The notes under the pieces were generated by a model. That model made no database searches, was not told the DNA's origin, and saw only the letters and a list, made by a program, of their open reading frames with translations. Both the position numbers and the translations under genes were made by a program. DNA of 64,000 bases from Octopus bimaculoides (lineage: Eukaryota). This document shows, in pieces, positions 1,310 through 54,700 of this stretch (positions within the stretch are counted from its first letter, which is position 1; each line of letters starts with the position of its first letter). The DNA lies in the NCBI RefSeq assembly GCF_001194135.2, contig NC_068986.1:61303055-61367054 (forward strand), in the 5' to 3' direction.

Positions 1310-1439
1310 GTGCAGGCATGCTTCTTTCAGTTTCTCTCTACCAGATCTACTCACAAGGTTTTGGTGGATCCAAGGCTATAGCAGAAGATACCTGCCCAAG
1401 CTGCTATGCAGCGGAACTGAACCCGGAACAATTTTGGTC

Positions 1440-1445
<6 letters not shown>
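1310..1445 (-). mobile_element. tRNA-derived SINE fragment (family 2)
   Basis: TTCTTTCAGTTTC..CTCACAAGG..GCTATAGCAGAAGA..TGCCCAAG..GAACTGAACCC is the reverse complement of the SINE head and core at 6562 and 29393. Confidence 0.7.
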
Positions 1446-2170
<725 letters not shown>

Positions 2171-2232
2171 TGATTTATATATAAAAATTTGATTTGTAAA
2201 GATCTCTAATCTTTTTTCAACCTCTGTGTGTA

Positions 2233-2279
<47 letters not shown>

Positions 2280-2318
2280 ATATGTATATGCATGTATATA
2301 TGCTTATATATGTATGTA

Positions 2319-3178: not shown

Positions 3179-3369
3179 TATGTATGAACATGTATGTGCT
3201 TGCGTGTATGTGAATTCATGTGCAAGTGTCTATTTACGTGTATTTGTATTTGCACATATACATATGTGAGTGCATATATTCATATGACTGTATAGATATG
3301 TGCAACCATATACATGTAAAGTTTCTGTTGTATCCATGCACATTATATGCACACAAGTGCATTTGTATA

Positions 3370-3429
<60 letters not shown>

Positions 3430-3433
<4 letters not shown>

Positions 3434-3466
3434 CAATGTTAATTCTCTAAATGAAGTATTAACAGT
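3430..3466 (-). repeat. short copy of an unclassified (TA)n-abutting repeat (also at about 63178-63212)
   Basis: TAAGCAATGTTAATTCTCTAAATGAAGTATTAACAGTA matches the reverse complement of about 63176-63213 with 4 mismatches. Confidence 0.7.
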
Positions 3467-3483
3467 ATGTACTTTATATATAT

Positions 3484-3640
3484 ATCATCATCATCATCAT
3501 CATCGTTTAACGTCCGCTTTCCATGCTAGCATGGGTTGGACGATTTGACTGAGGACTGGTGAAACCGGATGGCAACACCAGGCTCCAGTCTGATTTGGCA
3601 GAGTTTCTACAGCTGGATGCCCTTCCTAACGCCAACCACA
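3484..3640 (-). mobile_element. RTE LINE 3' terminal fragment with (GAT)n tail
   Basis: (CAT)n-CGTTTAACGTCCGCTTTCCATGCTAGCATGGGTTGG, the same sequence type as the 3' ends of the long RTE copies in this window. Confidence 0.9.
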
Positions 3641-4209
3641 CATATGTATGTGTGTGCATGTGTGTATGTATTTTTACTTAATTTCTTTATGATCCCCACC
3701 ATCTTTATCTATCTCTCTCCCTCCCTTCTCTCTTTCTAATACTTTGATACAATGTTTCATTACTGCATTTCTTGTACTTACCAGATAACTTACTCCACCT
3801 ACCTCTTTTATAATCCTTCCCCCTTTCTTTCTTTCTTCTCTTCATTTTTCCTTATTTTACTGTCACCTTTCCACCACTTCACCCATCCAACCCCTGCTCC
3901 ATCCCAATGTCAAATACCATAACAATAATTTTCCAATTTTGTTCCTTTTCCTCTCTCTTCTTCTCAGGCAACTGAAAATATGTATATGTATATGGTTGCA
4001 GATATCTGACAAGCATGTACACATGGACACATATATATGTATGTAAGTGCATGTGTGGGTATGTACATATGTAGGTATGAAGGTATATGTATATATGTGA
4101 AGATATGTGTATACATGTATGCACATAGATATATATGCATATATGATACATGTGCGTGTGTGTGTGTATTTTGCACACATGTATATAGTCGTAGATTTAT
4201 ATGTTTGTA

Positions 4210-6062: not shown

Positions 6063-6561
6063 TGTGTATGTGAATTCTTTAATCCATGGATTTTAAAATT
6101 TATACAAACAAACTTACGCTTCTATTAATCATTAATTATTACTTAATCTCTCTTCTGGACATGCATTACTCCTTTCTTCACTCAAGGTTTTTTCGATATA
6201 TAATATAATATATTTATATTTTACGATTCAATTTATATACCCCCAACCTGCCCAACTGTTAGCAGATACAACACCATTTATATTTTGAAAATAAATTACC
6301 CAATGAAATTCAAATGCTTATTTGTCAAATTGAATTATATCAAATCATATCTCACATGTACCATCACAATTTTATTCCAGTCTTGATCTCAACTGTCCAA
6401 TGAACAGAAATGTGAAGTCTGAGTAGCAGTTGTTTTGTGATGGTTTTGCAGATTTAATAAAAAAAAGCATATCAGTATTTGGGTATTATTATCTTCCACC
6501 TTGTTCTGCATTTATGTGCTTACTCACGTGTGTGTGTGTGTGTGCGTGTGTGTATATATAT

Positions 6562-6945
6562 GTAGGCACAAGTGTGGTTGTGTGCTAAGAAGCTTGCTTT
6601 CCAAACTCATGGTTCCAGGTTCAGTCTCACCATGTAGCACCTTGGGCAAATGTCTTCTATTATAGCCTTGTAAGTAGATTTGATAGATAGAAACTGCAAG
6701 AAGCCCTTCATGTGTGTATGTGTGTCCATGTGTGTGTGTGGGGGGGGGTGTCTTTGTGTCTGTGCTTGTCCCACAACCACCACTTGACAACAGGTGTTGG
6801 TGTGTTTACATCACCATAACAGCAAGGGAGACTAATAGAATAAGTATCAGGCTTAACAAAAGTTTGTACAAGGGTAGATTAATTTCACTAAAAAGTCCTC
6901 AAGGCAGTCTAATGACTGAAATAAGTAAAAGATAAAAGATGTCTG
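6562..6945 (+). mobile_element. tRNA-derived SINE (family 2, with internal microsatellite)
   Basis: Head GTGTGGTTGTGTGCTAAGAAG..GGTTCAGTCTC (A/B-box-like), core GCACCTTGGGCAAATGTCTTC, internal (GT)n and an A-rich 3' end. Confidence 0.8.
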
Positions 6946-6977
6946 CACATACATGCGCATACATATGGTACAAAAAA

Positions 6978-7022
<45 letters not shown>

Positions 7023-7704
7023 TATCATCATCATTTCAATGCTCACAATTCCATGCAATGCTCACTATTCCATCAGATAGAGTTTATCTGAGGTAGATTT
7101 TCAATGGCCAGGTGTCCTTTTTGTTGCCAACCCTTACCAGTTTCCAAACAAGACAATATTTTCCCATGCCCAGACATGTTTTGCAGAATATTGGAAATGA
7201 ATGGTATTTATTTACAGCATTCACACAATGGAAGTGTCAACAAAAAAGGTTTTTTGAAGATAGAAACAGAAGGATTAACTATTTACAACCTATGATCAGG
7301 TTCCTTATTGGATAAAGAAAAACATCAACAACCAAGATGTATCAGTAAAGTATAGACTGCTTGGTGAAAGGGCCAAGTTAACACAGCTAATCTTCCATGT
7401 ACTAGCACAATGTCCAAAAATACCACAATCTGAATATAAGGTCAGACATGAATAATCTGGCTAGGATTATCCATCTAGAACTGTGCCTTATTAGTGAGAT
7501 CAAATAGTATAACCACAAATCACAAAATGCCATGGATCTAGAAGTAAAATATTTTGGTTCTGTACAAAAAATGTGACATTATTGTTTGAAAATGTGACAT
7601 TATTGACACAGCAATCACCGAGGAAGAAAAAGTGACCAACAACAGACTGAGAGGAGAACTGAAAAAGATCAGACTTAAAGTAATTAAGTGTGAGTCCAAA
7701 CATA

Positions 7705-8985
7705 CAGGGTGTCCCAGAAAGATTTAGCCATGTTTAAAACTCTTTCTAAAGAATATCAGTTTAAGTAATAGTATCTACATTTTACATAAGGATTTGCACA
7801 TGTCTTTTGTTCATGTGTCTATTGTTTCATTTGTCTATAACAGGTTTGTAAACAAACATGGCATCGAAAGCAAAGCGTAACTAGACTGTCACTTTGAAAA
7901 TAGTTGGAGTGAGCAACAAGGACATAACAAAACAATTGAAAGTGTGCCGTAAAACAGTGTTCAAAACCTGCAAATGGCATATGGAGTTTGCTACTACCTC
8001 TAGCAAGCCAATGTCTGGTAGGAAGCAATCAATTTGTTCCAAACAAACAGTTGAAACTGTGAAGAAGTGAAATCCCCACAGGAGTGCAAGAAAAACTGCA
8101 AAAGCTCTTGATATTTCGAAATCATCAATGCACAGGATTTTTAAAGAGGATTTAAAGCTAACTACATACAAGAAACAATCCCAGCAGTTAACTTCAACAG
8201 CCTCCAAGAAGAAACAGCTTGACAGAGGTAAAACCATGTTAGCTGAGATGAAGCACACCGTTAACAAAGTGTTGATCTGGTCTGATGAGATTTTCACCAT
8301 GGAGGCAGTTACCAACAGGCAGAATGACAGGCTATGTGCACATAATGCAGGAGACTTGCCCAAAGGTAGCAGGAGTCATTTACACTGTCAGAAGCCAGCT
8401 TCACTCATGGTGTGAGCCTCAGTTGCAACTGATGGGTCCAAGTCTCCCTTGATCTTCATCAATGCTGGTGTCAAGGTCAACAGTGAAGTTTATGGGGAAA
8501 TGTTGAATGAGAAAGTGTTACCCTGGGTCACAGAAACCATTGGTGACTGTTACATCTTCACTCAAGACAGCCCACACAACCAATTTGACACAGTGGTGGT
8601 ACAAAGAACATTTCAGCGATTTTTGGGATAAGACGATATGGCCTCCCTCAAGTCCAGACATCAATTCCATGGACTTTGCTACTTGGTCCATCCTAGAGAG
8701 TAATATTTCTGCTCACTCCTATTCAACTGTGTCAGATCTGAAGAAAGCCCTTCAGTCTTCATTGGTCAAACTGGATGAAGAGATGGTACAATGCTCATGC
8801 AACTCAGTGACCACTTGTTTGCAGGTTATGGTCAAGGCAAAAGGTGGTCATTTTGAAATGTAATTACTGCAATGGATTGACAATTTACATTAGAACGTGT
8901 GTGCCAAATTTCATTATCCTACTACTTTAAGTTTATTATGAATAATTAAGAAATATCAATGGGTAAATCTTTCTGGGACATCCTG
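7705..8985 (+). mobile_element. full-length decayed Tc1/mariner element, probably maT (DD37D) type
   Basis: 27-bp TIRs CAGGGTGTCCCAGAAAGATTTAGCCAT / ATGGGTAAATCTTTCTGGGACATCCTG (2 mismatches) with TA TSDs. The transposase has WSDE, QD and WPPSSPDINSMDF motifs. Confidence 0.9.
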
Positions 8986-9635: not shown

Positions 9636-12600
9636 CATCATCATCATCATCATCATCGTTTAACATCCACTTTCCATGCTAGCATGGGTTGAACAATTTG
9701 ACTGAGTACTGGTGAACCGGATGGCTGCAGCAGGCTCCAGTCTGATCTGGCAGAGTTTCTACAGCTGGATGCCCTTCCTAACGCCAACCACTCCAAGAGT
9801 GTAGTGGGTGCTTTTACGTGCCACCAGTATGAGGGCCAGTCACACGGTACTGGCAATGGCCACGCTCAAAATGGTGTTTTTACGTGCCACCTGCACAAGA
9901 GCCAGTCCAGCAGCACAGGCAACGACCTCGCTCGAATGATTTTCTAAGGTGCCACCAGCACAAATGCCAGTAAGGCGACACTAGAAATGATCATGCTGAA
10001 ATGGTGCTATTTACGTGCCGCTAGCACGGAAGCCAGACAGCTGCTCTGGCAATGATCACGCTTGGACGATGCTGTTAGTGCTCCACTGGCACAGGTGCCA
10101 ATCACCGAATATGGTTCAATTACAATTTCGATTTCACTTGCCCCAACAGGTCTTCGCAAGCAGAGTTTAATGTCTAATGAAGGAGAGGTTGGCATGGGTG
10201 CCAGTCGTCGAATTTGGTTCAATTTCGATTTCAGATTTACTTACATCAACAGGTCTTCGTAAGCATAGTTTAGTGTCCAATGAAGTAAAGATACGAATAA
10301 GTGAGCTGGCTACACTTCTAGCAGAGGCCACAGATTATGCCCTCACTTGGCTTGCTGGGTCTTCTCATGTACTGCATATTATCAAAGGTCCCGGTCAATA
10401 GTCATTGCCTTCGTGAGGCCTAAAGTTCGAAGGTCGTGCTTCACCACCTCATCCCAGGTCTTCCTGGGTCTACCTCTTCCACAATTTCCCTCAACCGCTA
10501 GGGTGTGGCCCTTTTTCACACAGCTATCCTCATCTATTCTTGCCACATGACCATACCAGCGCAATCGTCTCTCTTGCACACCACAACTGATGCTTCTTAG
10601 GTCTAACTTTTCTCTCAAGGTACTTACACTCTGCCAGGTATGCACACTGACATTACACATCCATCGGAGAATACTGCCTTCGTTTCTTGCGAGCTTATGC
10701 ATGTCTTCAGCAGTCACAGCCCATGTTTCACTGCTATGTAGCATGGCGGTTCGTACACATGCGTCATACAGTCTGCCTTTTACTCTGAGTGAGAGGCCCT
10801 TTGTCACCAGCAGAAGTCAGAGCTCTTTGAACTTTGACCAGGCTATTCTTATTCTAGCAGCCACACTTTCGGCGCACCCTCCCCCCGCTACAAACTTGGT
10901 CACCCAGATAGCGGAAGCTATCAACTACTTCTAGTTTTTCTCTCTGGAATGTGGCAAAGGTTGTTTACTGCACATTTGCCATGTTTATTGCTCTTCAGCA
11001 TCTGTCACATACAAAAACTATCTTGCTAGTTAGCCTTCCTTTGATATTGCTGCACCTCTTATGTGTCCATAGCTTACACTGGGTACAACTTATGGAGTTA
11101 CTACCTACGCCTTCTCTACAGATCGAGCAGGCCCATCTACCTGAAGGGATTTGTGTTTTGTCTACCTTCCTACTTATTAGTACTTAAGTTTTAGCTAGGT
11201 TGACTCTAAGGCCCTTCGATTCTAGTCCTTGCTTCCACACCTGAAACTTCTTCTCCTCTAGTTCTGATAGTGACTCAGCAATTAGGGCAAGGTCATCAGC
11301 ATAGAGGGGNNNNNNNNNNTCTTCTCCTCTAGTTCTGATAGTGACTCAGCAATTAGGGCAAGGTCATCAGCATAGAGGGGCTCCCAGGGGCATCCTGTCT
11401 TGAATTCCTGTGTTATTGCCTGGAGGACTATGATGAATAGGAGTGGGCTGAAGACTGGACCCTGGTGGACCCCTGCCTCTACCCGGAATTCTTCACTGTA
11501 CTCGTTGCCAACCCTCACCTTACTGACAGCGTCCCTGTACATGGCTTGCACAGCTGTCACTAACCATTTGCCTATCCCTAGTTTTCTCATTGACCACCAG
11601 ATAAGGGAGCGGGGGACCCTGTCAAAGGCTTTCTCCATGTCAATGAAAGTCAGGTACAGAGGTTTATCTTTGGCTAGGTATTTCTCCTGCAGCTGTCTTA
11701 CCAGAAATATAGCATCAGTGGTGTTTTTCCCTGGAATGAACCCAAACTGCATCTCATCTAAGCTGACTCTAATTAGTTGGGCTAGGACCTTCTCAGTGAC
11801 CTTCATTACCTGGTCCAACAACTTGATACCTCTGCAATTGTTTTTGTCTAAAGCGTCACCTTTACCTTTGTAGCAGTTGACTATGGTGCTGCTACACCAG
11901 TCATTGGGTATGTCTGCTTCGTGTATCACCTGATTAACTATACGGGTAACTTGGCAAAAGCCGACACTGCGAGAGATTTTGAGCATCTCTGCAGTGATTC
12001 TTAATGGGCCGGGGGCTTTCCCTGTCTTCATACTCTTGATCGCTTTATCTACCAAGGTACTATCAATTAGGATAACTGGTCCTTCTGTTGGGTTGACATG
12101 CAGCAGACTCTCTTCCTTGCATTCATTCTATTTATTAAGCAACCTTTCATAGTGGCGTCTCTAAACCTCTCTCTTTGCAGCCTCGTTTAGTGCAAGTGAG
12201 CCATCATCCATGCAGACACATTTCTCTCCTACGACATCACGATTCTCTCTCACACACTGTCTTAATTCTTTATTGCCCACAAGGGGCTAAACATAGAGGG
12301 GACAAACAAGGACAGACAAAGGGATTAAGTTGATTACATCGACCCCAGTGCGTAACTGGTACTTAATTTATCGACCCTGAAAGGATGAAAGGCAAAGTCG
12401 ACCTTGGCGGAATTTGAACTCAGAACGTAACGGCAGACGAAATACCGCTAAGCATTTCGCCCGGCGTGCTAACGTTTCTGCCAGCTCACACACTGTTTTG
12501 CAACACAAAATACTCCAAGTCTTTGGTCCTCACGACGCAGAACATTGGCATATTTTTTCTTATCTCCTTCCCTTTTGGCAACCTGATACAACTCCCTGCT

Positions 12601-18455: not shown

Positions 18456-20664
18456 TGCAGAGATGCTCAAAATATCTGGCAGTGTCGGCTATAGCCTAGT
18501 CACCCATATAGTTAACCAGGTGATATATGAAGGAGTCATACACAATGACTGGTGTAGCAGCACCATAGTCAACTGCTACAAAGGTAAAAGTGAGGCTTTA
18601 GATACAAATAATTACAGAGGTATCAAGTTGTTGGATCAGGTAATGAAGGTCACGGAGAGGGCCATAGCCCAACTAATTAGGGAGTGAGTCAGTTTAGATG
18701 AGATGCAGTTTGGGTTCGTGCCAGGAAAAAGCACCACTGCTGCTATATTTCTGGTAAGACAGCTGCAGGAGAAATACCTAGTCAAAGATAAACCTCTGTA
18801 CTTGGCTTTCATTGACATGGAGAAAGCCTTTGACAGGGTCCCCCAATCCCTAATCTGGTGGTCAATGACGAAACTAAGGATAGATAAATGGTTAGTGACA
18901 GCTGTGCGAGCCATCTACAGGGATGCTGTCAGTAAGGTGAGGGTTGGAAATGAGTACAGTGAAGAATTCTGGGTAGAGGCAGGGGTCCACCAAGGTTCAG
19001 TCTTCAGCCCCCTCCAATTTATCATAGTCCTCCAGGCAATAACACAGGAATTCAAAACAGGATACCCCTGGGAGCTCCTCTATGCTGATGACCTTGCTCT
19101 AATTGCTGAGTCACTATCAGAACTTGAGGATAAGTTTCAGGTGTGGAAGCAAGGACTAGAATCGAAGGGTCTTAGAGTCAACCTAACTAAAACCAAAGTC
19201 CTAATAAGTAGGAAGGTAGATCTGTAGAAAAGGCATAGGTAGAAACTCTATAAGATGTACCCAGTGTAAGCTATGGACACATAAGAGGTGCAGCAATATC
19301 AAAGGAAGGTTAACTAGCATGATAGTTTTTTTTTATGTGGCAGATGCTGAGGAGCAATAAACACTGAAAATGTGCAGAGAACAACCTCTGCCATATTCCA
19401 AAGAGAAAAACTAGAAGTAGTTGATAGCTTCCGTTACCTAGGTGACCAAGTCAGTAGCGGGGGAGGGTGCGCTGAAAGTGTAGCTGGTAGAATAAGAATA
19501 GCCTGGTCAAAGTTCAGAGAGCTCTTACCTCTGCTGGTGACAAAGGGTCTCTTGCTCAGAGTAAAAGGCAGACTGTATGACAATTGTGTACGAACAGCCA
19601 TGCTACATGGCTGTGAAGCATGGGCCGTGACTGCTGAGGACATGCGTAAGGTTGCAAGAAATGAAGCTAGTATGCTCCGATGGATGTGTAATGTCAGTGT
19701 GCATACTCGACAGAGTGTAAGTACCTTGAGAGAAAAGTTGGACCTAAGAAGCATCAGATGTGGTGTGCAAGAGAGACGATTGCGCTGGTATGGTCATGTG
19801 GCGAGAATGGATGAGGATAGCTGAATGAAAAAGGGCACCTGTGGAAGAGGTAGACCCAGGAAGACCTGGGATGAGGTGGTGAAGCACGACCTTCGAACAT
19901 TAGGCCTCACCGAGTCAATGACTATTGACTGGGACCTTTGGTAATATGCAGTACATGAGAAAACCCAGCAAGCCAAGTGAGGGCATAATCTGTGGCCTCT
20001 GCTAGAAGTGTAGCCAGCCCACTTAAGTGTACCTTTCCTTCTTTGGGCACTAAACTCTGCTAGCGAAGACCTGTTGAGGCAAGTGAAATCGAAATCGAAC
20101 CAAATTCGACGACTGGCACCCATGCCAACCTTCCTTCATTGGACACTAAACTCTGCTTGCGAAGACGTGTTGGGGCAAGTGAAATCGAAACTGAACCAAA
20201 TTCGATGACGTACACCCGTGTCAGTGGAGCGCTAACAGCCCCATCCGAGTGGAATCATTGCCAGAGCAACTGTCTGCCTTCCATGCCGGTGGCACATAAA
20301 AGGCACCATTTCAGCATGATCATTACCAGCATTGCCGTACTGGCACTTGTGCCGGTGGCACGTGAACAAAACATTTGAACGAGGTCGTTGCCAGTGCCGC
20401 TGGACTGACTCCTGTGTAGGTGGCACTTAAAAACACCATTTGAGCATGGCCGTTACCAGAAGCGCATGACTGGCCCTCGCGCCAGTGGCACGTAAAAGCA
20501 CCCATTACACTCCCGGAGTGGTTGGCGTTAGGAAGGGCATCCAGCTGTAGAAACTATGCTAGATTGGATTAGAGCCTGGTGCAGCTATCTGGTTCGCCAG
20601 TTCTCAGTCAAATTGTCCAACCCATGCTAGCATGGAAAGCGGGCATTAAACAATGACGATGATG
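18456..20664 (+). mobile_element. RTE LINE copy B, 5'-truncated
   Basis: QFGFVPGKST, KAFDRVP and LYADDL RT motifs, 3' UTR and (GAT)n tail; same family as copies A and C. Confidence 0.95.
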
Positions 20665-20679
20665 AATATAAAACTGAGA

Positions 20680-32500: not shown

Positions 32501-33228
32501 GGAAGAGGTAGACCCAAGAAGACTGGGATGAGGTGGTGAAGCACAACCTTCGAACATTAGGCCTCACCGTGGCAATGACTAGTGTGCGAGACCTTTGGAA
32601 ATATGCTGTGCATGAGAAGACCCGGTAAGCCAAGTTAGATCATAACCCGTGGCCTATGCCAGGGGTGTAACCAGCCCACTTATGTGTATCTTTCCTTCAT
32701 TGGACACTACACTCTCCTTGTGGAGATCTGTTGATACAAGTGAAATCGAAATCGAATCAAATTCGATGACTGGCACCCGTGCCAGTAGAGCGCTAAGAGC
32801 ACCATCCGAGCCCGATCGTTGCCAGAGCAGCTGTCTTGCTTTTGTGCTGGTGGCACGTAAAAAGCACTATTTGAGCGTGATTATTACCAGCGTCGCCTTA
32901 CCGGCACTTGTGCCGGTGGTACGTGAAAAAACATTCGAGCAAGGTCTTTGCCAGTGCCGCTGGATTGGCTCCTGTGCAGGTGGCATGAAAAATACACCAT
33001 TTGAGCATGGCTGTTGCCAGTACCGTACGACTGGCCCTTGTACCGGTGGCACATAAAAGCACCCACTACACTCTCGGAGTGGTTGGCATTAGAAAGGGCA
33101 TCCTGCTGTAGAAACTCTGCCAGATCAGATTGGAGCCTGGTGCAGCCATCTGGTTTGCCAGTCCTCAGTCAAATCGTCCAACCCATGCTAGCATGGAAAG
33201 TAGACGTTAAACAATGATGATGATGATA
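29542..33228 (+). mobile_element. RTE LINE copy C, near full length, disabled
   Basis: CFQEVRWRG, AGDFNG, KAFDRVP and LYADNL motifs, 3' UTR and (GAT)n tail. A second 3' UTR copy follows at 33239-33522. Confidence 0.95.
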
Positions 33229-33525
33229 NNNNNNNNNNGTGGTCATTGCCAGTGCCGCTGGACTGGCTCCCATGCAAGTAGCATATAAAAAACACCTTTT
33301 GAGCGTTGTCGCTGCCAGAACCATCTGGCTGGCCCTCGTGCCAGTTTCACGTAAAAGTACCCACTACACTCTTGGAGTGGTTGGCATTAGGAAGAGCATC
33401 CAGCTGTAGAAACTTTGCCAGATCAGATTGAGCTTGGTGCAGCCTCTGGCTCACCAGTCCTCAGTCAAACCTTCCAACCCATGCTAGCATGGAAAGTAGA
33501 CGTTAAACAATGATGATGATGATAT

Positions 33526-37372: not shown

Positions 37373-40268
37373 GTTTTTTTTATTATTTAGGCCTCCGTCA
37401 GTCATGGCTGACCATGGATGTTGTCATCCATCCGTTGAGTTGTCTATTCAGTTTTTGCAATGCCGCCTGTGGCTGTAGAGACCGATGCGAGAGTGGCAGT
37501 CTTGTTTGCAGAGGTCACACCTACACGTTGAATCCGGTCTGTAGGCTGTCATTTCTTTTCTGCGGGCTCAGTTTTCAGCTGCTGCCACCCTGAAATTCTC
37601 TTCACCGGTCTGCAGTTGTTTGTGAAGAGTGCCTCTCCAGCTGGTTTGGTTGGCTGCGAGATCCTCCCAGGAATTGGTGTTGATACCAAGTGCCTTCATA
37701 TCCCTCCTGCACACGTCCCTGTACCTCAGCTTCGGGTGGCCAATGTTTCTCTGCCCTGCGACAAGCTCTCTGTAAAGGACATCCTTTGGGATCCAACCAT
37801 CCTCATACGGCAAACGTGGCCAATCCAGCGCAGCCAACATTGTCTTAGTAAGGTGAGCATGGTGGGGAGGCCAGCACGAGACAGAACGTCAGTATTGGTT
37901 ACTTTGTCTTGCCAGAGGATGCCGAGTATGCATCGGAGGCTTCTGAGGTGGAAGGTGTTGAGCCGTTTCTCCTGGCAGGCATATGCGGTCCATGTCTCGC
38001 TGCCATATAGTAGGGTGCTGAGGACGCAAGCACTGTACACAGCCATTTTCGTTTTCACTGTTAGCTTGGTGTTTGTCCTCACTCTTGGTGTGAGGCAAGC
38101 GTATGTTGTGGCTGCCTTCCCGATCCTCTTGTCTATCTCAGCATCTAGGGAGAGGTTGTCAGTGATAGTGGAACCAAGGTACATGAACTGGTGGACAACT
38201 TTGAGCTCATAGTTGTCAATGGTGATGACAGGTGGTGCCGGCATGTTTTGACCCATAACGTTTGTCTTCTTCAGACTGATAGTCATTCCAAAGTCTTTGC
38301 AGGCCTGAGCTAAGCAATCCATCAGCAGCTGCAGTTCCCTCTGAGTGTGAGTCGCAACTGCAGCGTCATCAGTGAACAGCATGTCTCTAATGAGGACTTC
38401 ACGGACCTTTGTCCTCTCTTTTAGGCGAGCAAGATTGAACAGCCCACCATCCAATCTCGTCCGTAAGTATATTACCTCATGTGCTGTGCCAAATGCATGC
38501 CTCAGGAAGAGTGAGAAGAAGATCCCGAAAAGGGTTGGGGTGAGTACGCAGCCTTGTTTGACCCTGCTGCGTATGTCGAAGGGCTCGGAGAGGTTGCCGT
38601 TGAACTACGCAGTCCCTTTCATGTTGGAGGGGAAAGACTCGATTAAGCTGTGCAGTTTTGGAGGACAGCCGATCTTTCGGAGAGCCTTGAAAAGGCTGTC
38701 TCTGCTGACAAGATCAAAGGCTTTGGTGAGATCAATGAATGCGACGTAGAGGGGCATCTGCTGCTCTCTGCACTTCTCCTGGAGATAGCGAAGGGTGAAG
38801 ACCATGTCTATCGTGGATCTTTCAGCTCAGAAGCCACACTGTGATTCTGGGTAGATATGTTCAGCCAGCTTCTGCAAATGGATCAACAGGACCCGAGCAT
38901 AGACTTTACCAACTACACTAAGGAGGGAGATACCTCTGTATTTGTTGCAGTCACTTCTTTCACCCTTGTTCTTGTAAAGGGTGATGATTTTAGCGTCCCT
39001 CATGTCTTGCAGCACGCTTCCCTCCTTCCAGCACTGGCAGAGAACCTCATGCAAGGGCTGTAGCAAGGTAGACTTGCAGTGCTTGATGAGGTCTGGAGGA
39101 ATACTGTCGCTGCCTGGTGCCTTGCCTGCAGTCAACCTGTCAACAGCCTTACTGAGCTCATTCATGGTAGGCTCTGCATCGAGCTCTTCCATGACTGGTA
39201 TGCAATTGATGGCATCAAGGGCTGCAGGAGTCACTGTTGCCTCTCCAGAATAGAGGTCAGAGTAGTGCTCCATCCATCTCTCCATCTGCCTGCCCTGGTC
39301 GGTAATGATTTCCCCGGTGTTGGATTTGAGGGGGGCGTTCTTGTTCTGTGTTGGTCCCAGTGCCTTCTTGATACCATCGTACATGACTCTGATGTTGCCT
39401 GTTGCAGCAGCCTTCTGAATCCTCTTACTGAGCTCTGTCCAGTACTCGTTGGCACAGTGCCTGCCGATGTTCTGAACCTTGCTCCTGGCCGCCTTGAGGA
39501 TCTTCAGGTTTTTTTCAGTGGGTGACCACTTGTATTCTACGAGTGCAGCACGCTTGGCCTCAATGACGGGGTTCATCGTGGACAACTTGGCGTCAAACCA
39601 GTCATGTGGCTTCGAGGCCCTCTTCCCAAAAGTTGCCAGGGCAGTGCGGTGGATGGTGTCTCGCAGAGTTTCCCACTTCTCTTTGGCAGTATCTCCGGCC
39701 TTCGATGCATCATATACTTCTTCAAAGGCCTCTGTGAACTGTTCCACAAGATTGAGCTGAGTCATCTTGCTAACGTCAATGTACGAGGCCCTCGGTTTCT
39801 TTGCACTGTGGAACCTTTTTGGTTGCAGCCTGATTTTGCAGCATACCAGGGAGTGGTCTGTGTCGCAGTCCGCACTGTGGTAAGAGCATGTATGGAGAAT
39901 GTTTTTTATGGCAGCACGCCTGACCACAATTAGATCCAGTTGGTGCCAGTGCTTTGAGTGTGGGTGCCTCCAGGAGACCTTGTGTTGGAGTTTCGTTTTG
40001 AAGAAGGAGTTGGCGATGCACAGGTTGTGAAGGGCACAAAGTTCGAGCAGTTGCTGACCATTCTCATTGAGTCTTCCCACTCCAAACGAACCAAGGCATG
40101 AAGGCCACGAGTCGCTGTCTGCACCCACTCTGGTGTTGAAGTCACCCAGGAGAATAAGCTGTTCGGCACTTGGTATATTCTTGATGGTAGATGAAAGGTT
40201 CTCATAGAACTCATCCTTGGTGTTCGAAGTGGCGGACAGTGTTGGGGAATACACACTGATGAGTACTG
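37373..40268 (-). mobile_element. RTE-clade LINE of a second family (BovB/RTE-1-like), 5'-truncated, relatively intact
   Basis: 491-aa ORF with LLGDFN, KVSWRHPHSKHWHQLDLI and KAPGSD; then FIDLTKAFD, LFTDD and LLYGSETW. Probable 8-bp TSD CATCATGA (37365-37372, 40269-40276). Confidence 0.93.
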
Positions 40269-40789
40269 CATCATGAATACTGTACTGTCTTATTGTGTTC
40301 ACATCCTAGATATTTAATGCACAAATCAAATTTGTTCAGTTTGTCTCAGTAGGTGCCATAGGTTAAGAACAGTTTGCTGATCTAAACAGCAATAGCATGG
40401 TTGAATTATAAATAAAATACATTCCACAGTCTAAACAATTTACAGTTAAACTATTCATTGTCCTATAAGCATATAGTACTGAATTCAAATTCTTCAGTGG
40501 GTTTAGATTACTTATTTAGTTCACATTACTTCATGAGGAGCATAGGTCTGCAACTATTTCATGTCAGTGAACAAAACCATGAGCTACTTCCTTACTTTCA
40601 AACCAAAACAAACTAATTGCTTTCACTTCATCTTTCACACATACTTTCCAGGTTTTCTTCGGCCGGTTTAAATGCTAAAGAGTTAAGAAAGGAATGACTC
40701 AATTGAAAATGTAATCTAAAATAAATTATGTCTGAAAAGACTGGATGATCATGGCTAGAATATCTTTCTTTGTAGGTATGCTCAAGTAG

Positions 40790-43614: not shown

Positions 43615-43899
43615 CATCATCATCATTTAATGTCCGTGTCCACAGGCGACTGTGCAACATTGAAGCCTGCACCAAACTTCTGTGACTGTTTTGGCAGGAT
43701 TTTTACATCTGCTCTTCCTAATACCAACCACTCAGCAGAGAAGGCTCTGCTGAGTGGTTGGTATTAGGAAGAGCAGATGTAAAAATCCTGCCAAAACAGT
43801 CACAGAAGTTTGGTGCAGGCTTCAGCCTGGCTGGCTTTTGTGGTACCATCCCATCCATGCTAACATGGAACACGGACATTAAATGATGATGATGATGAT
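43615..43899. repeat. palindromic element: perfect 80-bp inverted repeat (43661-43740 / 43745-43824, loop AAGG) inside outer (CAT)n/(GAT)n-tailed inverted arms
   Basis: Checked base by base: the inner arms are exact reverse complements. The sequence derives from the RTE-type 3' tail (GAGTGGTTGG..AGGAAG.GCA). Confidence 0.95.
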
Positions 43900-45704: not shown

Positions 45705-48700
45705 ATTTGGAAGTAGAAGTAGAGATTAATAGTTCTCCTATATTTTTATTCCATCTAAAGGCTACAATAGGCAGTTGAGGAAATATATGTTTGAAATGAG
45801 GATATTTTTCCGCAACATGCTGCTAACTTTCAACACTTTTGAAATGCCAGTGAAATTTCAGTGCCAGTTAATCACTAAAAGAATTCTGTTACATATTGCA
45901 CTTTGTTTGCTAAAATTATGCGTGAAAGTTTGACTTTCTTTGCTAGTCTAAGCTATGTCATTTGCTATTTCTTTTAATTGTGATTCACTGTAACTGTGTT
46001 TAACACATTGGTGTATTTGCATGTTTCCAGTATTCCCCTATGTTAGTACAAATCTATTTTATCCTCAAAAATTGGGATTTCGGATTTGACCGAATTTTAT
46101 GAAGTGGATGATCGGAGCGGCAGTGGAGGTAAATGTGGGATGACATGGGCTTGCAAAATAACTCTGTCACTATTCTGCCTCCAAAATTTTTGTGTCCAAA
46201 GATTCAACACTAGTTTTTGAAAAACTAGACATAAATTTTATGTTGGACTTAAAGCCATAGATTTTAGCATAATAGTCACAGAAATGCATGAAGTCAATTA
46301 AACTATCTTGTGATCCTTCCCAGACGAAAAGGACATCATCAATGAACTGTAACCAATAGTTCATGACCATATAGGGAATTGAATGTCTTCAGTAAGTGCA
46401 TCTTAAATTTCATCATGAAGACATTAGCAGAATTATGGGGGTACCCATGGTGCAACCCCTTGTCAAATGGTAAAATTTTTGTCCAAATTTCATTGTGTTA
46501 CTTTGTAACACAAATCTCAATAGCTTCCAGATGAAATTAGAAGGAATACTTTTGTTTGACCGTTTTTTGAAAGCATTCATGCATGCTCCTACCACTTCAT
46601 TGTGGTCACTATTGGAACACAAGGAAGAAACATCCATGGTTACCAGAATACAGTTTATGACATGACTTTAGTGCTTTAAAAAGTTGTTAATTTTAGACAC
46701 AAAATCAAAAGTATCTCGAATATAGGAACTTGATCTTTTTGCAACAGGGAGTAGAATGCCATCCAGTCACTCTGAAATTTTGGCTGTACAACATTCATAC
46801 CCACTGCAAATTGGGCTCATTGGAGGAAATCTTTTGAACTTCTTGTGTATCTTAGGGAGACCATAAAATATAGGTGTTCTTTCTGTCCATAAAATCCTGG
46901 ATTTGACCTTATTAATGAAATTGTTTTTCTCCATTTCGAGAATCATTTTGTCAAGTTCCTCTCTGTAATTGGGATTTGGATCAACAGGTAATTCTTCATA
47001 TGAAGTTTTGTCACTTAAAGCTTCTTCACAAGCTGAAATATACTCGCTTTTGTCCATATAATTACAATAGCGCCTCCTTTATCTGTCATTCATTTTTACA
47101 ACAATAGAATCATTTTTAGCGAGACAGCAGAGTCATAACGTTGGGAATTTGTGAGGTTATTCCAGGACTTCTTTCCACTTGTTTTAAGGCTTTCCCTAAT
47201 GCCTGTCTAACCAAGATTCAAGAAATTCCAGTCGTGCTTGTGAATGTCCATCTTGAACTTAATCTGGATACCAATTGGGATTCTTTTCAATCCATTTATG
47301 CCAGATTCGATCACCTTTTTAATTTTCAGTAAGCATAGGGATTTCTGTCTCCTTGTCATCATTTTGACAAATAAAATATTCCTTCAGCTTGTGACGACAA
47401 ACTAAAATAGCCCTTGAGCTACTTTATTCTTCACAAAATTCTCAGAAGCACAGTCCAAGCACCAATCAGAGACATCATCAGGTGAAAGTTTTAATTTAGA
47501 TAAATTTATGGCCAATATATTCTCTAGTGTGATGGATTTTCTTGGGCAATTGTTTTTCAGAGTCTTACTTTCATTAGATTCCTGACTACCTTTTGGGCTT
47601 TGCTCAAAATCTTCACTTAAAACGTGGAACCTATTGAGTCATAAAATTTGTTCTGAGTGTTCATGTTAGTAGTCTTAATTTTTAGTCGTCTTTCTAAGAG
47701 TAATCCATTTCTGGGTGGGTGTGGCTTTTGTAGGCATTTGAAAAACATTTGCTTTCAGGAAAGGAATAAATTTATTGTTTTCGAGCAAAATCTTAAATGT
47801 GTTCACATTTTTGATTGATGAAGTAAAAACCTCTCTGGAGCACTTTCAATGACCAGTTCAAATGTGTATGCTAGGGTAAAATAACCTCAATCATATGCAC
47901 CAACTTAGGGATTATTAATATAAATTTGTTGAACTGTAGGGTTTATATTTGTTTGTGGTGAGTACAGCATTGTCATTTGTGCTGTTAGTTCGTGTGGTAC
48001 CGGTAAGTTCAAACTGTCATAAACATCGAAAAAATTAGTTGACAAAACAAAATGATTGTTTCTGGTGTGACGAATGAACAATGTGTCTTGTGGACTGTAT
48101 ATTAGAAATTCCATGTGAGGAGAAATGGTTGGTTGTACTGGAATTTCAGGAAAATTTTCCACTATGATTTTCAGCCCGGCATCAATGTCACATAACATTT
48201 ATTCCAAAAGTAAAAACAACTTCACATATTTAAAAGCAAATGTTCTCAACCAAAATGTTCCCTTGCCCACTGGCTCAGAGGGATAGGAAATCAGCTTTTT
48301 CAGCTTCTTTTACTTTTTTGTCTTTAGGAATGAAATTTTCTTTTTTTTTTCAAAGTTCATCAAACAATTACACAAGTAGCTGAAACAGTTTTTAGAAGAA
48401 CATACCTGATCAAGAACACTCAAAATCTCCTTAATGCCTGCACCAAGCAATACTAATTTTGAATGATAGTGTTCAATAATAACTTTCATTATGTGAAATG
48501 AATTGCTCTCACCAATCAATTTAAACTTTGAAGCAATGAATCATCAGGCACACATTGGTACATTTGGTCAATGCACACATTGGTATATTTGATGTAAGAC
48601 TGTCCGATATAATTGTTTCTAGTTTGCATGTTTCCAGAAATGATAACTGGCTTTTGATTTTAGCACAGAAATGATTAAGTTTTTTAACTGATAGAAATGT

Positions 48701-48880
48701 TGATTTCTTATTTTCTGATTCGTATTTGAATGGTACAAAATCCATTGACCCAGGATTGGACACAACATTGGGGTCTAGTGAAACTAACAGTGCTGACAAG
48801 CCAGCCGTAAGAATCAATAAAATGCAAAAGCTGTAACCTACATTAGGATTTTCATTAGACACCCGACTGTTTAGGTAACT
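45705..48880 (-). mobile_element. Penelope-like retroelement arm 1: N-terminal domain + Ulp1-like protease + RT, lacking the GIY-YIG end
   Basis: SQLSFLETCKLETII (PLE N-terminus), HTRNNHFV/YDSL/D*G (protease), AINLSKLKLS, FYGLPKIHK, MDVSSL, GCTMGT, LQFIDDVL, YLHCRSDHP and PIVAFRWNKNI. Confidence 0.9.
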
Positions 48881-48884
48881 TCAG

Positions 48885-51590
48885 GTAACAAATGTTATGT
48901 GACAAATTTATTGACGCCAGTGGAAAATTTTCCTGAAATTCCAATACAATCAACCATTCTTTCTCACATGGAATTTCATCACATCAGGAACAATCATTTT
49001 GTTTTGTCAACCAATTATTTCGGAGATGTTTATGTTTATGACAGTTTGAACTTACCATACCACAGGAACTAAAAGCATCACAAATAAAAATGCTGTACTC
49101 ATCACAAACAAATATAAACCCTACAGTTCAACAAATTTATATTAATAATCCCTAAGTTGGTGCATATGATTGAGGTCATTTTACCCTAGCATACACATTT
49201 GAACTGGACATTAGAAACACTCCAGAGAGGTTTTTATTTAATTAATCAAAAATGTGAGTACATTTGAGATTTTGCCTTGAAAACAATAAATTTATTCCTT
49301 TCCTGAAAGTAAAAGTTTTTCAAATGCCTACAAAAACCACAACAGTTGTTCACTTCCTATCACCCATCCAGAAATGGATTACTCTTAGAAAGACAACTAA
49401 AAATTATGACTTCTCACATGAACACTCAGAAGAATTTTTATCACCCAATAGGTTTCATGTTATAAGTGAAGATTTCTAGCAAAGCCCAAAAGGTAGTCAA
49501 GAATCTAATGAAAGTAAGATTCTCAAAAACACTTACCCACGAAAATCTATCACACTACAGAATAAATTGGTCATAAATTTATCTAAATTAAAACTTTCAC
49601 CTGACAATGTCATTGTTGTGGTGCTTGGACTGAGTATCTGCCAAAGTACTAAGAATTTTTAGAAGAATAAAGTAGCTCAAGGGCGATTTTAGTTTGTCAT
49701 CACAAGCTGAAGGAATATATTTTTTTGTCAAAATGATGACAAGGACTCAGAAAACTCTATGCTTACTGAAAATGAAAAAGATGAAGATCAAATCTGGCAT
49801 AAATGGATTGAAAAGAGAAGAATTTGATAAAATGATTCTCGAAATGGAGAAAAACAATTTCATTAATAAGGCCAAATCCAGGAATTTATAGACATAAAGA
49901 ACACCTATATTTTATGGTCTCCTTAAGATACACAAGAAGTTCAAAAGATTTCCTCCAATGAGAGCAATTTGCAGTGGGTATGAATGTTGTACAGCCAAAA
50001 TTTCAGAGTGACTGGATGGCATTCTACTCCCTGTTGCAAAAAGATCAAGTTCCTATATTCAAGATACTTTTGATTTTGTGTCTAAAATTAACAACTTTTT
50101 AAAGCACTAAAGTCATGTCATAAACTGTATTCTGGTAACCATGGATGTTTCTTCCTTGTGTTCCAATAGTGACCACAATGAAGTGGTAGGAGCATGCATG
50201 AATGCTTTCAAAAAACGGTCAAACAAAAGTATTCCATCTAATTTCATCTGGAAGCTATTGAGATATGTGTTACAAAGTAACACAATGAAATTTGGACAAA
50301 AATTTTACCATTTGACAAGGGGTTGCAAGCGTGATCATTGCCAGAGCAGCTGTTTGGCTTCCATGCTAGTGGCACGTAAATAGCACCATTTGAGCATGAT
50401 CGTTACCAGTGTTGCTTTACTGGCACTTGTACCGGTGGCACGTTAGAAAATCATTCGAGCGAGGTCATTGCCAGTGCCCCTGGACTGGCTCCTGTGCAGG
50501 TGGCATGTAAAAAACACCATTTTGAGTGTGGCTGTTGCCAGTACTGCATGACTGGCCCTTGTGCCGGTGGCACGTAAAAGCACCCACTACACTCTCGGAG
50601 TGGTTGGCGTTAGGAAGGGCATCCAGCTATAGAAACTCTGCCAGATCAGATTGGAGCCTGGTGCAGCCATCCCCTTCACCAGTCCTCAATCAAATCTTCC
50701 AACCCATGCTAGCATGGAAAGCAGATGTTAAACGATGATGATGATGATGATGATGATTTCCTCAGCTGCCTATTGTAGCCTTTAGATGGAATAAAAATAT
50801 TGGAGAACTATTAATCTCTACATCTGCTTCCAAGAAAACTAACACTGGAGTCTCTGCATGCTGTACCTTGAAAAACGGCTGCAAGAGAGCTAAGCACAGT
50901 TCATTGTGCAACAGCAATCGTAACAGAAATTTTATGATTTACACAGAAGGTGGGATGTGTAGAAATTCCTGTTTGGTGTATGTAACGGAATGCATGAAAC
51001 ACAACTTGATTTATGTTGGTTGTACAACAGAACAATTAATCAAAAGATTCAATGGGCATAGATATGACATCAGGCACAATAACAGTGGTTTGACAGAACT
51101 TGCCAAACATTTTGCATCAAACAGCTGCAATTTTAAAAAAGACCTGAAAGTGCATATTTTCAGAAAATATTCTGACTCTGCTACATTTTTAGTACTCAAA
51201 ATGCATAAGGAGAAATATGTTTATGAGTTATTAACATCACGCCCTGGAGGAATGAATAAAATGACAGAATTTCATCATATTTACACAAAATTGTTTGATT
51301 AAATATTCTTCTTTTTCCTCTTGTTTTTTCTTTTCTTTTCTTTTTCTCTCTTTTCTTTTTTTTTCTTTTTGCCAGTTGTAAACTTGAAAATTGAAAATTG
51401 ATGATGTTATTCCATCAGTGTGGTTGCCCTCATTCATATTTTGGATTTCAATTTCTATAATTTTGAATTTCCATGTATTACATTTCATTTTGAACTCAAC
51501 AAATACAGGCTAGCTGTCGAAATACCATTCAACCAATAAAACACCTATTGCAATCACATCACACTCTTTGTATTGTCTATTTACCTTTGT
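48885..51590 (+). mobile_element. Penelope-like retroelement arm 2: protease + partial RT + C-terminal GIY-YIG endonuclease + 3' UTR
   Basis: Inverted homolog of arm 1. ORF 50868-51302 has LVYVTEC..NLIYVGCT, RFNGHRYDI and PGGMN (Neptune-like GIY-YIG); a degenerate CTCAACAA..GTCGAAATA motif lies near 51495-51525. Confidence 0.9.
50328..50757 (+). mobile_element. RTE 3' UTR fragment inserted into PLE arm 2
   Basis: AGCGTGATCATTGCCAGAGC..CCATGCTAGCATGGAAAG..(GAT)n. Confidence 0.92.
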
Positions 51591-51739: not shown

Positions 51740-54700
51740 TATACAACAGTAAGAGAATTAAAAACAAAACAATGATAGTAATGGGGACCTACTGATACAG
51801 GAGGACTTTAGGGATAATCAAGGAACCCCACCATCGAAGATCTCCCTGAATACCAAGGTCAAGTGCCCTCGAACTCCTTTCCTCCAACTCACAGGTGTAC
51901 ACTTAGAGCAATATCATCCACTCTTGCCATTTTTGCAACTTTCACCCACATTTTAATTTACTCAAAGACAGCACCTCCCTATCCACCCTCACTTTCCTTT
52001 TCAAGTGAAACTTGAAAAAGTCAATCAGGTCTTTACCATAGAGGAATGTTTCTGTCCTCATTCCTTTCAACCTCGTCCACCACAGCCACCAGGCAAAAGA
52101 AAATAGCCTTGCCTGCCTGATTAAAGGAGGGTGGCAGGGCAATCATCACTATGGACTCAGCCAACAGACAGCTCTGTCCCACATGTGACAGCAGCTGTTC
52201 AACATAACTCCACAAGTCAGCAATGCCCAGACACTGAGCAAGTGCATGTAGAACAGTTTCATCACCCTATGCACACCTCGGACATCTATGCCCATAGAGG
52301 TTATCTTGAACTGGAAAGTTTGCCAGAATAGACTAGCCAGTTTGTTTATGCTGATACCCAGGGTCCCAAGAATGTCGTTGAACTTCCCTGGTATTAATCC
52401 TTATATATATATATATATATATAGCTAAAGTGGAACATCAACCGATCCTATTGCCCAACTGGTAGAGGGCAGTGAGTACCTGATGGCATTCTAGGTGCCA
52501 GTTGCCCAGTCTTGGTCTATCCTTCACCCAGGACTGCAGCTCCATCAAAGGGACATGTTTCATAAAGATGTGCCACACAAACAGAGCCCACAGATGTTCA
52601 CTATCTAGAAATTATTGCAAATGGCACAACCTGAGTGTGTGTCTGTGAATCAAAAGCCATGGCATGCCTAAGCTGCCACACAGAGGGAGCTGGCAGCAGA
52701 TTGACAGCCTGACCATTGGAACACATCCCTTCCACAAGAAAATAAACAAGAGATGCTCCAAACTAATCAAGCAGTAACTGGGACAAGGTGCAATGATCAG
52801 GTGATAAATGATGCCAGAGGCATTGTAGGCATTTACCACCTCTGCCTGACCTTTCAGAGACAGCTTCCTCTCTGCCCATTTCTGAGTAAGACTGGCCACC
52901 CTGTTCATAATCTCATCCCAATTATTATTCACCTGGAGGTCAGGACTGAACCAGACCCCAAGAAGTTTAATTGGTCTGTCAGTCTAGCATCCAATGACAC
53001 AATCTGATGGTATCAATCTGGCTCTCCAGGTGCCCAGTCACAACCCCACTGACTTGTTAACATTGATTTTGGCCCCTGCAACAAACTCATATTCTTTTAC
53101 AATGAAGCTGACCATCTGCATATGCCAACACTGCTCTTCTGAGTCCCAGTTTGAAAGGGACGTCCCTTAACTGTTCCAACTTCTGCAGCAGTGGCTTGAG
53201 AGCCAACATGTACAGAAGAGGGCAGTCCTGACAGACCGAACATGTGATGCAAAACAGTTCTGATAGGTGGCTGCTTACATTAACCACTGAGCAGATGCTG
53301 CTGTGCATCGCAGCAATCCAGCCTCTTAAAACAGGTCTGAAACACATTAAGGACAGCCTTCAAGTAGCAATGGTCAACCCTATTGAATGCTTTTGACTAG
53401 TCTAAATTGATTGGGGCCCCACCAAAGACAGCTTTAGTTCCAGCCATCTCTATGATGTATTGCGTAAGGTGGAGGTTGTCATGGGTAGACCTGTTCGAGA
53501 CTGTGCACATTTGTACCTCCCTGACCAGACTAGTGACAACAAGCACCAACCTTTCACTAGCACTCTGGCCAAAATCTTAAACTCTGTGTTTAGCAGAGTT
53601 ATGGGTCAAAAATTTCCTAGCACGTCCCCTTGTCTGCATTTTTTCTCAGTAGTGTTAGCACACCCCAGCTAACAGCACTAGGAATTCTGTTCTGTTACTA
53701 GTTATGGTAGATATCTGCTAAAATGCTGCCAAACAAATCTGGTATGAGTATATAGAATTCATAGGGCGGACCATCCAAACTGGGTGATTTGTGACTTGTG
53801 CAATCACTCATCAACTCCTATATTTCAGTGGTCATTATCAGCTTTTCGCAGAATCTCATGTCTGTTACCAAGAGTTGTGGTAAGCCATTCAATTACAAAA
53901 TAAAGTCCACTGCTGTTGTCAACCCATCACCCTCCCCAAACAGTCATGCAAAGTGCTGCTGGAAAGCCACACACATCTGATCAGAACCAAGTAGCACGTG
54001 CCCATCCTGATCCACCAAAGACTTGATTGTGGTTTTGTTGCCATGTCACATCTCTACTGTTCAGGCCCATCAGATAGCTTTAGTTCCTCTATGCTTTAGC
54101 ACATGGGCCTTAGCTCTGACAATGCATCTTTCATGTTTTGCCTCAAAGAAATGGTCAAGGGCCATTCTCGCCACTACCACATTGGTCGCAATGCCTACAC
54201 TAATTGCCTCTTCTAGTTTGCTAACAAGTTTTCTCCTCTAATCTATTTCTTTCTATTGCTAAACACTATCGATTCTACTCTAATCACCCTCTTTAGGGTG
54301 ATCCACTATTGGTTGTTGAAGACTGCCCCTGTCTGCTTAACTAGTTCACTAATCCGGTCCTTGTAGTCTTTGTGTGCCAGTAAGGATGCATTCAACTTCC
54401 AGTAACCAGGTCCCTGTCTATGGATCCTATCTAAATTAACAATGCATATCACAAATTTGTGATCTGTATAGCTGATCAATTTAAACTGTGTACAACCTAC
54501 GCTATCCCTATCCTCTGACCTAACAAATACTCTATCTAAATATGATCTGGATGACCCATTGTAGTTGCTCCATGTCCACACAGGGACATCAGGGAAATTC
54601 AGTCAGTACCTATCAGATAGCTGGAAATTCCAGAGCAGGTTTTTGAAGCTTTTACATCCACTTCTGCTATGTACTAAACCCACATAGTCTTTCCGTGCAT

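Follow-up and report, generated by a model that had tools for sequence, protein, structure and literature searches.

Fossil head-to-head copies of a Penelope-like element in Octopus bimaculoides, with relatives in which a C48-like protease is fused to the reverse transcriptase

Penelope-like elements (PLEs) are described, also in a 2026 review (PMC13269885), as encoding a reverse transcriptase (RT) and a GIY-YIG endonuclease only. A stretch of 64,000 nucleotides (nt) from the octopus Octopus bimaculoides (contig NC_068986.1, positions 61,303,055 to 61,367,054; the whole stretch is called the window below) raises the question of whether some members of this class also encode a protease, since a first-pass annotation had reported an Ulp1/SENP-like (C48) cysteine protease in one frame with a PLE motif, VINLS, upstream of the RT. 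Positions 45707-51581 of the window are occupied by two inverted, decayed copies of one PLE, placed head to head in an AT-rich region with many repeats. We consider them, with a probability of roughly 0.85, to be the fossil remains of an element from a lineage with a six-part single open reading frame (ORF). The order of these parts is a leader with a 2A-like motif, a helical region, a C48-like protease, a linker, the N1-N3 motifs with RT core and thumb, and a GIY-YIG endonuclease.

An inverted pair and its intact relatives

The minus-strand copy, arm 1, runs from 48867 down to 45707; it covers everything from the N-terminal leader up to and including the RT and thumb, without GIY-YIG. The plus-strand copy, arm 2, begins at 48868 and ends at about 51581, a 3' limit defined by homology to a copy from Octopus sinensis (L001); it is truncated at the 5' end, so that the start of the protease is missing, and it keeps the GIY-YIG domain and the 3' end. 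The pairing was established by an inverted-repeat search and pairwise alignment, and alignment together with translation bore out the earlier observation that one and the same protease-like peptide is encoded in both arms. Homology between the arms begins at 48218 (arm 1, running down) and at 48868 (arm 2, running up). Besides its 5' third, arm 2 has lost an internal segment, and it has gained a foreign insert. Identity between the arms is uneven: it is 97-98% in the RT block (46451-46964 in arm 1, 49814-50327 in arm 2) and only 86-94% in the 5' part with protease and linker (47471-48218 and 48868-49611), a difference that gene conversion or a mosaic origin might explain.

Six-frame translation reveals the hallmarks of PLEs, namely the N1 motif 'VINLS...LS', the N3 motif 'DKGG', RT motifs ('FIDDV') and thumb motifs. 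The degraded RT of the window has no Pfam match of its own; used as a query, it retrieved 209 PLE proteins with RVT_1, DUF8422, HTH_animal and GIY-YIG annotations, the best match being Octopus sinensis LOC115222486, at 73% identity. These matches, the translations and the collinearity with intact relatives described below identify a PLE-type RT with upstream N1-N3 motifs and a thumb, and in arm 2 a GIY-YIG domain lies C-terminal to the RT. Inverted or partial copies and 5' truncation, a PLE trait, are likewise seen, in the head-to-head pair itself, in the 5'-truncated L001 and in the direct repeat of another locus, L004.

A word-indexed homologue search with the protease consensus returned only P0001 (metaclust UPI0006952852), a third copy of the family, 138 amino acids (aa) long, which matches the window at 47949-47560 and 49111-49522. 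We then used an HMMER query made of a stop-free 97-aa segment of arm 1 and P0001, which effectively covers only the 138 columns of P0001, i.e., the half of the domain with the catalytic Cys; with this query, 388 of 1.84 billion representative proteins were matched at E<=1e-3. Eight of the matched proteins are 1012-1461 aa long (P0132, P0133, P0141, P0187, P0247, P0259, P0134 and P0145), so that intact ORFs combining protease, RT and GIY-YIG, which the first-pass annotation had proposed to look for, do exist. The protease match is found at about aa 220-410 in the six of these ORFs that are N-terminally complete, and at the N-terminus in the truncated P0134 and P0145. All six complete ORFs begin with a leader of about 50 aa, which contains a hydrophobic stretch and closes in DPS[V/I]E-x-NPGP (CIELNPGP in P0133); the E.NPGP core lies at aa ~15-66 in each of them, and it precedes the protease in 12 representatives altogether.

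Two of these ORFs, P0133 (1187 aa) and P0141 (1223 aa), were compared with the window by tblastn. Arm 1 is collinear with aa ~2-1111 and arm 2 with aa ~234-1222 of the two proteins, and they match nowhere else in the 64 kb. In arm 1, P0133 aa 68-1111 and P0141 aa 2-1071 align from 48802 down to 45715 in frames -1, -2, -1, -3 and -2, one of the frameshifts being located near 47790, between protease and linker. The match is not due to chance, because intact relatives align to the arms with E-values of 2e-35 for the N-terminal and protease parts and 7e-74 for the RT.

Both copies in the window are dead and cannot be functional. Stop codons common to the two arms indicate either a single template that was already defective, or duplication after decay. 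A comparable arrangement occurs on L002, where the closest non-octopus RT relative, P0003, and a second, inverted PLE copy face each other head to head at 4560-5963 (minus strand) and 6001-7875 (plus strand); both are 5'-truncated.

The protease domain and its affinity

In each arm, a domain of about 170 aa lies upstream of N1, with His, Asp, Gln and Cys in the order known from Ulp1. Arm 1 has it at 47753-48267 on the minus strand, with the peptide quoted in the first-pass annotation in a single frame from 48198 down to 47776, three stops within the domain and an extra stop at 48199-48201. The arm 2 domain, at 48892-49308 on the plus strand, lacks the first ~25 aa and suffers from two frameshifts in its N-terminal half. 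The placement of the domain between a PLE N-terminal region and VINLS, which had been claimed for both arms, thus holds for arm 1 and fails for arm 2, which is truncated inside the protease.

The codons for the catalytic His ('NNHF'; 48052-48054 in arm 1, within 48989-49000 in arm 2) and Asp ('YDSL'; 48016-48018 and within 49037-49048) are intact. The Gln position is occupied by TAA (47905-47907 and 49153-49155), the catalytic Cys position by TGA (47887-47889 and 49171-49173), and the Arg of the 'MR.HL' tail also by TGA (47803-47805 and 49255-49257). When both arms are aligned with the domains of the eight long ORFs, the stops of the window fall exactly on Gln, Cys and Arg, and the proposed order of catalytic residues and the tail are corroborated. 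These three residues are present in P0122 (UniRef100_A0A0L8FR10), an Octopus protein of 183 aa that is very close to the window domain and is named 'Ubiquitin-like protease family profile domain-containing protein'. The first ~70 aa of P0001 represent the C-terminal half of the protease, with Gln and Cys intact in 'PQVSAYNCG'.

In the eight intact domains, which share 40-52% pairwise identity, the His, Asp, Gln and Cys are invariant, and the motif Q-x-G-x-x-D-C-G puts Gln and Cys at a spacing of 6, which is also the spacing in Ulp1. A profile built from these eight domains, A3, was searched against 5.8 billion proteins and matched 91, of which 20 carry a precomputed annotation with PF02902, the C48 family, at E-values from 8.7e-26 to 7e-8; P0173 and P0128 are matched by the query profile and by PF02902 alike (7e-13 and 2e-12). 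Against PDB sequences, the seven best matches of A3 are all Ulp1-like SUMO protease, SENP1 or SENP2, in which 'YDSL' pairs with the catalytic-Asp motif and 'Q.G..DCG' with that of Gln/Cys; single-sequence phmmer against PDB gave only a non-significant match on the active-site motif (E 0.6).

Structure prediction, which had been suggested as a check, favors the same assignment. The AlphaFold2 model of P0272, a relative that is 57% identical to the P0132 domain and is followed by N1 at its locus, was built from 42 aligned sequences and has a mean predicted local distance difference test score (pLDDT) of 85. SENP5, Ulp1 and SENP1/2/3/7 account for all of the top 26 Foldseek matches of this model in PDB (probability 1.0, E-values from 1e-5 to 1e-3), and target-normalised template modelling scores of the top hits are 0.5-0.69; Den1/NEDP1 and other enzymes of clan CE are found lower in the list. 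The C48-type fold and catalytic residues are thereby demonstrated for intact relatives, and the non-direct evidence that the domain belongs to clan CE and is C48-like is strong and consistent.

A number of observations pull in the other direction and have to be weighed here. The profile match anticipated for the domain did not materialize directly: PF02902 does not match the window domain at E<=10, whether stops are masked or repaired, nor the long ORFs at E<=0.01, and in PLE-linked relatives it stays below its cut-off of 20.7 bits (18.9 bits in P0154, 16.6 in P0127). The E-values of A3 against PDB are marginal (0.02-0.6), and the modelled structure is that of the relative P0272, not of the stop-containing window sequence. 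Members of the PLE group have Phe or Tyr, not Trp, directly after the catalytic His, and Glu, Asp or Gln is aligned to the W of 'WLND', though this second observation comes from a weak alignment segment (2.2 bits). The 2A-like motif retains (V/I)ExNPGP and has Ser or Cys in place of the canonical Asp. Finally, Rfam models detect no hammerhead ribozyme in the window between 40000 and 56000 at E<=1, nor in L001, L004 and L005 at E<=0.1; copy decay or the sensitivity of the model could hide one.

In SENP1, two Trp residues clamp the Gly-Gly tail of the substrate, and the first of them is the W of 'WLND'. P0109, a PLE protein, and the PHD-linked relatives discussed below keep 'HW'. The apparent substitutions in the PLE group mean that specificity for SUMO is not assured and that the classical SUMO tail may not be the substrate. 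They also lend some credit to the best-surviving alternative, in which the domain has the CE-clan fold and is not an isopeptidase of SUMO or another ubiquitin-like modifier (Ubl) at all, acting as a viral-type processing protease in cis, similar to adenain, I7 or pS273R, or as a YopJ-like acetyltransferase. A few relatives indeed have weak Pfam matches to the YopJ family (PF03421) or RickCE (PF22179), and adenain and pS273R of African swine fever virus appear lower in the Foldseek list. The best matches in both sequence and structure are, however, consistently Ulp1/SENP, with Den1/NEDP1 next, and the related proteins outside PLEs are C48 by Pfam. Moreover, inspection of the protease-RT linkers in the six long ORFs shows no conserved Gly-Gly or Ala-Gly cleavage site, and the 2A-like motif already offers an explanation for how the leader is separated. 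We consider this alternative improbable; the absence of a conserved site favors an isopeptidase acting in trans over self-processing, and the protease probably does not process its own polyprotein.

The products of such an element could be envisaged as follows. The motif DPS[V/I]E-x-NPGP would release the leader co-translationally, and the protease would probably act in trans on host factors, as a SUMO-type Ubl isopeptidase, possibly serving to blunt, for example, SUMO-dependent silencing of transposons. A role of SUMO in silencing guided by PIWI-interacting RNAs is established in Drosophila (Ninova et al. 2020, as cited in PMC13269885), and deSUMOylation of host silencing factors would be a plausible purpose of the domain. 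The furthest-reaching version of this proposal, according to which we would be dealing with an undescribed and widespread clade of endonuclease-positive (EN+) PLEs endowed with a functional 2A-like signal and an active Ubl protease that serves as an anti-silencing enzyme in trans, is improbable when taken as a whole.

Fusion of protease and reverse transcriptase in intact relatives

The case for fusion had been made from arm 2, where the D*G site of the protease (49168-49176) and VINLS (49570-49584) were said to be 133 codons apart in one frame. They are indeed in one frame with zero frameshifts, at a distance of 134 codons, and this frame is interrupted by five in-frame stops, at 49153, 49171, 49243, 49255 and 49477. 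The shared frame alone is weak evidence, because both arms are riddled with stops and frameshifts.

The long ORFs supply what the window cannot. Seven of the eight have RVT_1 and/or GIY-YIG matches in Pfam far beyond the protease, and the parts of the ORFs are ordered as in the window: protease, 'KW..P', 'NRF..L', a low-complexity linker, N1 ('V.N[LI]S'), N2/N3, RT, thumb and GIY-YIG. N1 occupies an equal relative position in all eight, P0132, P0133, P0141, P0187, P0247, P0259, P0134 and P0145. When a local hidden Markov model of the domain was run on all fetched proteins, at least 21 representatives had N1 downstream of the protease in one ORF; KW..P was seen downstream in 29 and N[RK][FY]..L in 27. 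Outside Octopus, the domain was traced to at least three assemblies: long ORFs are found in ERZ23489101 and ERZ27294820, which are independent of each other, and in ERZ25878582 N1 follows the protease. P0109, which came up in the search with the RT of the window alone, also begins with the protease. Protease-bearing PLEs have RTs that are 40-45% identical to that of the window. L004 represents a complete unit of 4.4 kb with one ORF (502-4284), delimited by a 58-nt direct repeat (431-488 and 4825-4882) and a (TA)n end; partial-tandem insertion structure and a (TA)n target are typical of PLEs (PMC8557442). Fusion of the protease in frame with the PLE RT is thus demonstrated in intact relatives, which is what had been claimed against a neighboring insertion: independent copies carry the domain in one ORF with RT and GIY-YIG.

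The competing explanation is that the protease came from another mobile element or a host gene that adjoined the PLE or was nested in it, the composite being duplicated afterwards and the common frame being accidental. With so many stops and frameshifts throughout both arms, 'in frame' says little about the window, and the third copy, P0001, reads the linker in a different frame: its remainder is a shifted-frame linker of ~70 codons without a stop. In addition, the closest non-octopus RT relatives sampled, P0003 on L002 and P0007 on L003, have no protease; being 5'-truncated, or in part of another lineage, they are uninformative, as is the Octopus sinensis copy L001, which is truncated downstream of N1 and hence silent on the protease-RT junction. 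Against this explanation stand the uninterrupted collinear ORFs of several assemblies, P0109 with its N-terminal protease, and L004, where the terminal direct repeat encloses a single ORF. The linker itself adds to this: KW..P and NRF..L are conserved in the frame used by the first-pass annotation, which marks this frame as the coding one; P0001, out of frame in its second half, was accordingly discarded as a guide to the linker. Intact collinear ORFs signify fusion and not nested insertion, and the latter alternative, which we rate as very improbable, is effectively excluded by them. As for the thought that the window enzyme might be active after all because TGA, found at the Cys position of both arms, encodes selenocysteine as in the Naiad PLEs (selenoprotein PLEs do exist; PMC8557442), its likelihood is negligible and we rejected it, given that the codon for the oxyanion Gln is TAA in both arms, that more TAA and TAG stops and several frameshifts are present, that both copies are truncated, and that intact relatives all carry Cys at this position.

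How the fusion may have come about is suggested by an ORF of L003 (8832-11765, minus strand), a PLE protein of 977 aa with a long N-terminal extension, without protease and without an NPG motif. Its motif 'HR.F..C....I.P.GL' recurs in the protease-bearing lineage between the 2A-like motif and the protease, which suggests that the protease was inserted into a pre-existing N-terminal domain of PLEs.

Relation to known elements and other features of the locus

Canonical PLEs with a C-terminal endonuclease (Penelope/Poseidon, Neptune, Nematis, Hydra) resemble the protease-bearing lineage in 5' truncation, in tandem or inverted partial copies and in the (TA)n target seen in L004. The lineage differs from them by an extra N-terminal module of ~400 aa, made of the 2A-like motif, the helical region and the C48-like protease, by its longer ORFs (1200-1460 aa with the protease, as compared to roughly 600-900 aa in canonical elements), and in that no hammerhead ribozyme was detected in it. 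In layout, the lineage comes closest to the NeSL/Utopia-1_TSP group of non-LTR (long terminal repeat) retrotransposons, where an N-terminal Ulp1-like protease is likewise followed by RT and a C-terminal endonuclease in a single ORF (PMC4640811). NeSL/Utopia elements, found in nematodes, have a non-LTR RT and a restriction-like endonuclease, whereas here the RT is of PLE type and the endonuclease is GIY-YIG; membership in that group was ruled out on the basis of the GIY-YIG endonuclease and of RT relatives that are PLEs. The protease was presumably acquired independently of NeSL/Utopia.

C48 domains have also been reported in Cryptons (PMC3212892). CryptonF/CryptonS proteins and proteins combining C48 with a PHD finger share with the PLE domain the catalytic motifs and the 'MR.HL..CLE....FP' tail, and A3 matches them at E-values from 1e-25 to 1e-15; the C48+PHD proteins differ in keeping 'HW' and the W of 'WL.D', often have a PHD finger after the protease, and are not fused to an RT. 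Proteins of ~170-330 aa with the same C48 subtype and a C-terminal PHD (P0294, P0305, P0318, P0331 and others) are the nearest non-PLE relatives of the domain.

The published 2A signature is GD(V/I)ExNPGP, and an active variant with Gln in place of Asp has been described (PMC3708506). N-terminal 2A-like sequences are known in non-LTR elements with an apurinic endonuclease-type (APE-type) enzyme, including those of molluscs (PMC3708506); these are similar in that E-x-NPGP lies within the first ~60 residues of one long retroelement ORF, and differ in belonging to another class of retroelements; the PLE motif has Ser or Cys at the canonical Asp position. A cysteine protease-like accessory domain has been hinted at in only one published PLE, Chlamys-1_cBra, whose weak Josephin-like motif (PMC8557442) is C-terminal and of a different protease type; this element is an N-terminal-endonuclease PLE of a charophyte alga.

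Apart from this motif, the statement of the first-pass annotation that no protease-bearing PLE is known holds in the literature that we searched: no paper on a PLE with a C48 domain or a 2A sequence was found, Repbase reports and subscription journals being outside of that search. The protease-bearing lineage is apparently undescribed. The in-frame Ulp1/SENP-like protease and the 2A-like motif widen the known domain repertoire of PLEs, and PLEs join the mobile elements (NeSL/Utopia long interspersed nuclear elements, Cryptons and other DNA transposons) that have, presumably independently, recruited the same accessory enzyme; such repeated recruitment suggests that interference with ubiquitin-like modification is a general strategy of transposons. 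Since most copies have lost their 5' part, repeat libraries can easily miss the module, and its isolated fragments are annotated as host 'ubiquitin-like protease' genes, for example Octopus A0A0L8FR10. The locus itself is a fossil, and its interest lies in transposon biology; the intact ORFs P0132, P0141, P0187 and P0259 are sequences that can be used for biochemistry.

The family-specific region upstream of the protease is found only in arm 1 (48867-48268). It includes a decayed 2A-like motif, 'DPNVVSNPGS' (48746-48775, minus strand), which has lost the Glu and the final Pro and which identifies the apparently 'unique centre' of the inverted pair, 48219-48867, as the 5' part of arm 1. Between this motif and the protease, at 48268-48745 on the minus strand, lies the N-terminal helical region, to which P0133 aa 68-129 and 136-235 align; in the AlphaFold2 model of P0272, a long helix precedes the protease core.

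Downstream of the protease, the linker of arm 2 continues in the protease frame (49309-49569, plus strand), with KW at 49372-49377 and NRF at 49447-49455, and leads to the N1 motif VINLS at 49570-49584, which is in frame with the catalytic-Cys codon. In arm 1, the N2/N3 motifs, RT core and thumb occupy 45783-47405 on the minus strand, as delineated by tblastn with P0133 and P0141 at E ~1e-74, and contain many stops and frameshifts. Arm 2 retains an RT fragment at 49814-50327 (plus strand), corresponding to the near-identical RT block of arm 1, and the ~320 nt upstream of this fragment (47281-46955 in arm 1) are deleted. In place of ~670 nt of RT and thumb, arm 2 has an unrelated interspersed repeat of ~430 bp (50328-50755, plus strand). 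The GIY-YIG endonuclease of arm 2 is an ORF of 144 aa at 50868-51302 (plus strand), which matches PF01541 at E 4.9e-4 with 20.8 bits, against a cut-off of 22.6, and aligns to P0141 aa 1049-1222 at E 5.6e-20 by tblastn; a GIY-YIG domain was also looked for on arm 1, and none was found there.

The ~430-bp repeat has an internal periodicity of ~130 bp and is present in at least five copies in the window, which are 85-92% identical to one another; by blastn, copies are located at 9636-10062, 32814-33227 (plus 33241-33523), 20254-20665 and 3484-3639. It also occurs in Octopus sinensis, at 7027-7387 and 14235-14562 of L001. The PLE pair is flanked by fragments of non-LTR retrotransposons on the minus strand, at 38827-40302 and 52612-54581; one of them is an ORF of 491 aa that encodes an endonuclease of the exo-endo-phosphatase type and the beginning of an RT, and more RT- and endonuclease-like ORFs follow downstream. 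Positions 43661-43824 form a perfect 80-nt inverted repeat with a 4-nt spacer, which is not AT-rich; it has sub-threshold matches to Rfam microRNA-precursor families (MIR1027, 54 bits as compared to the gathering score of 150), and could be a foldback or a hairpin resembling miniature inverted-repeat transposable elements.

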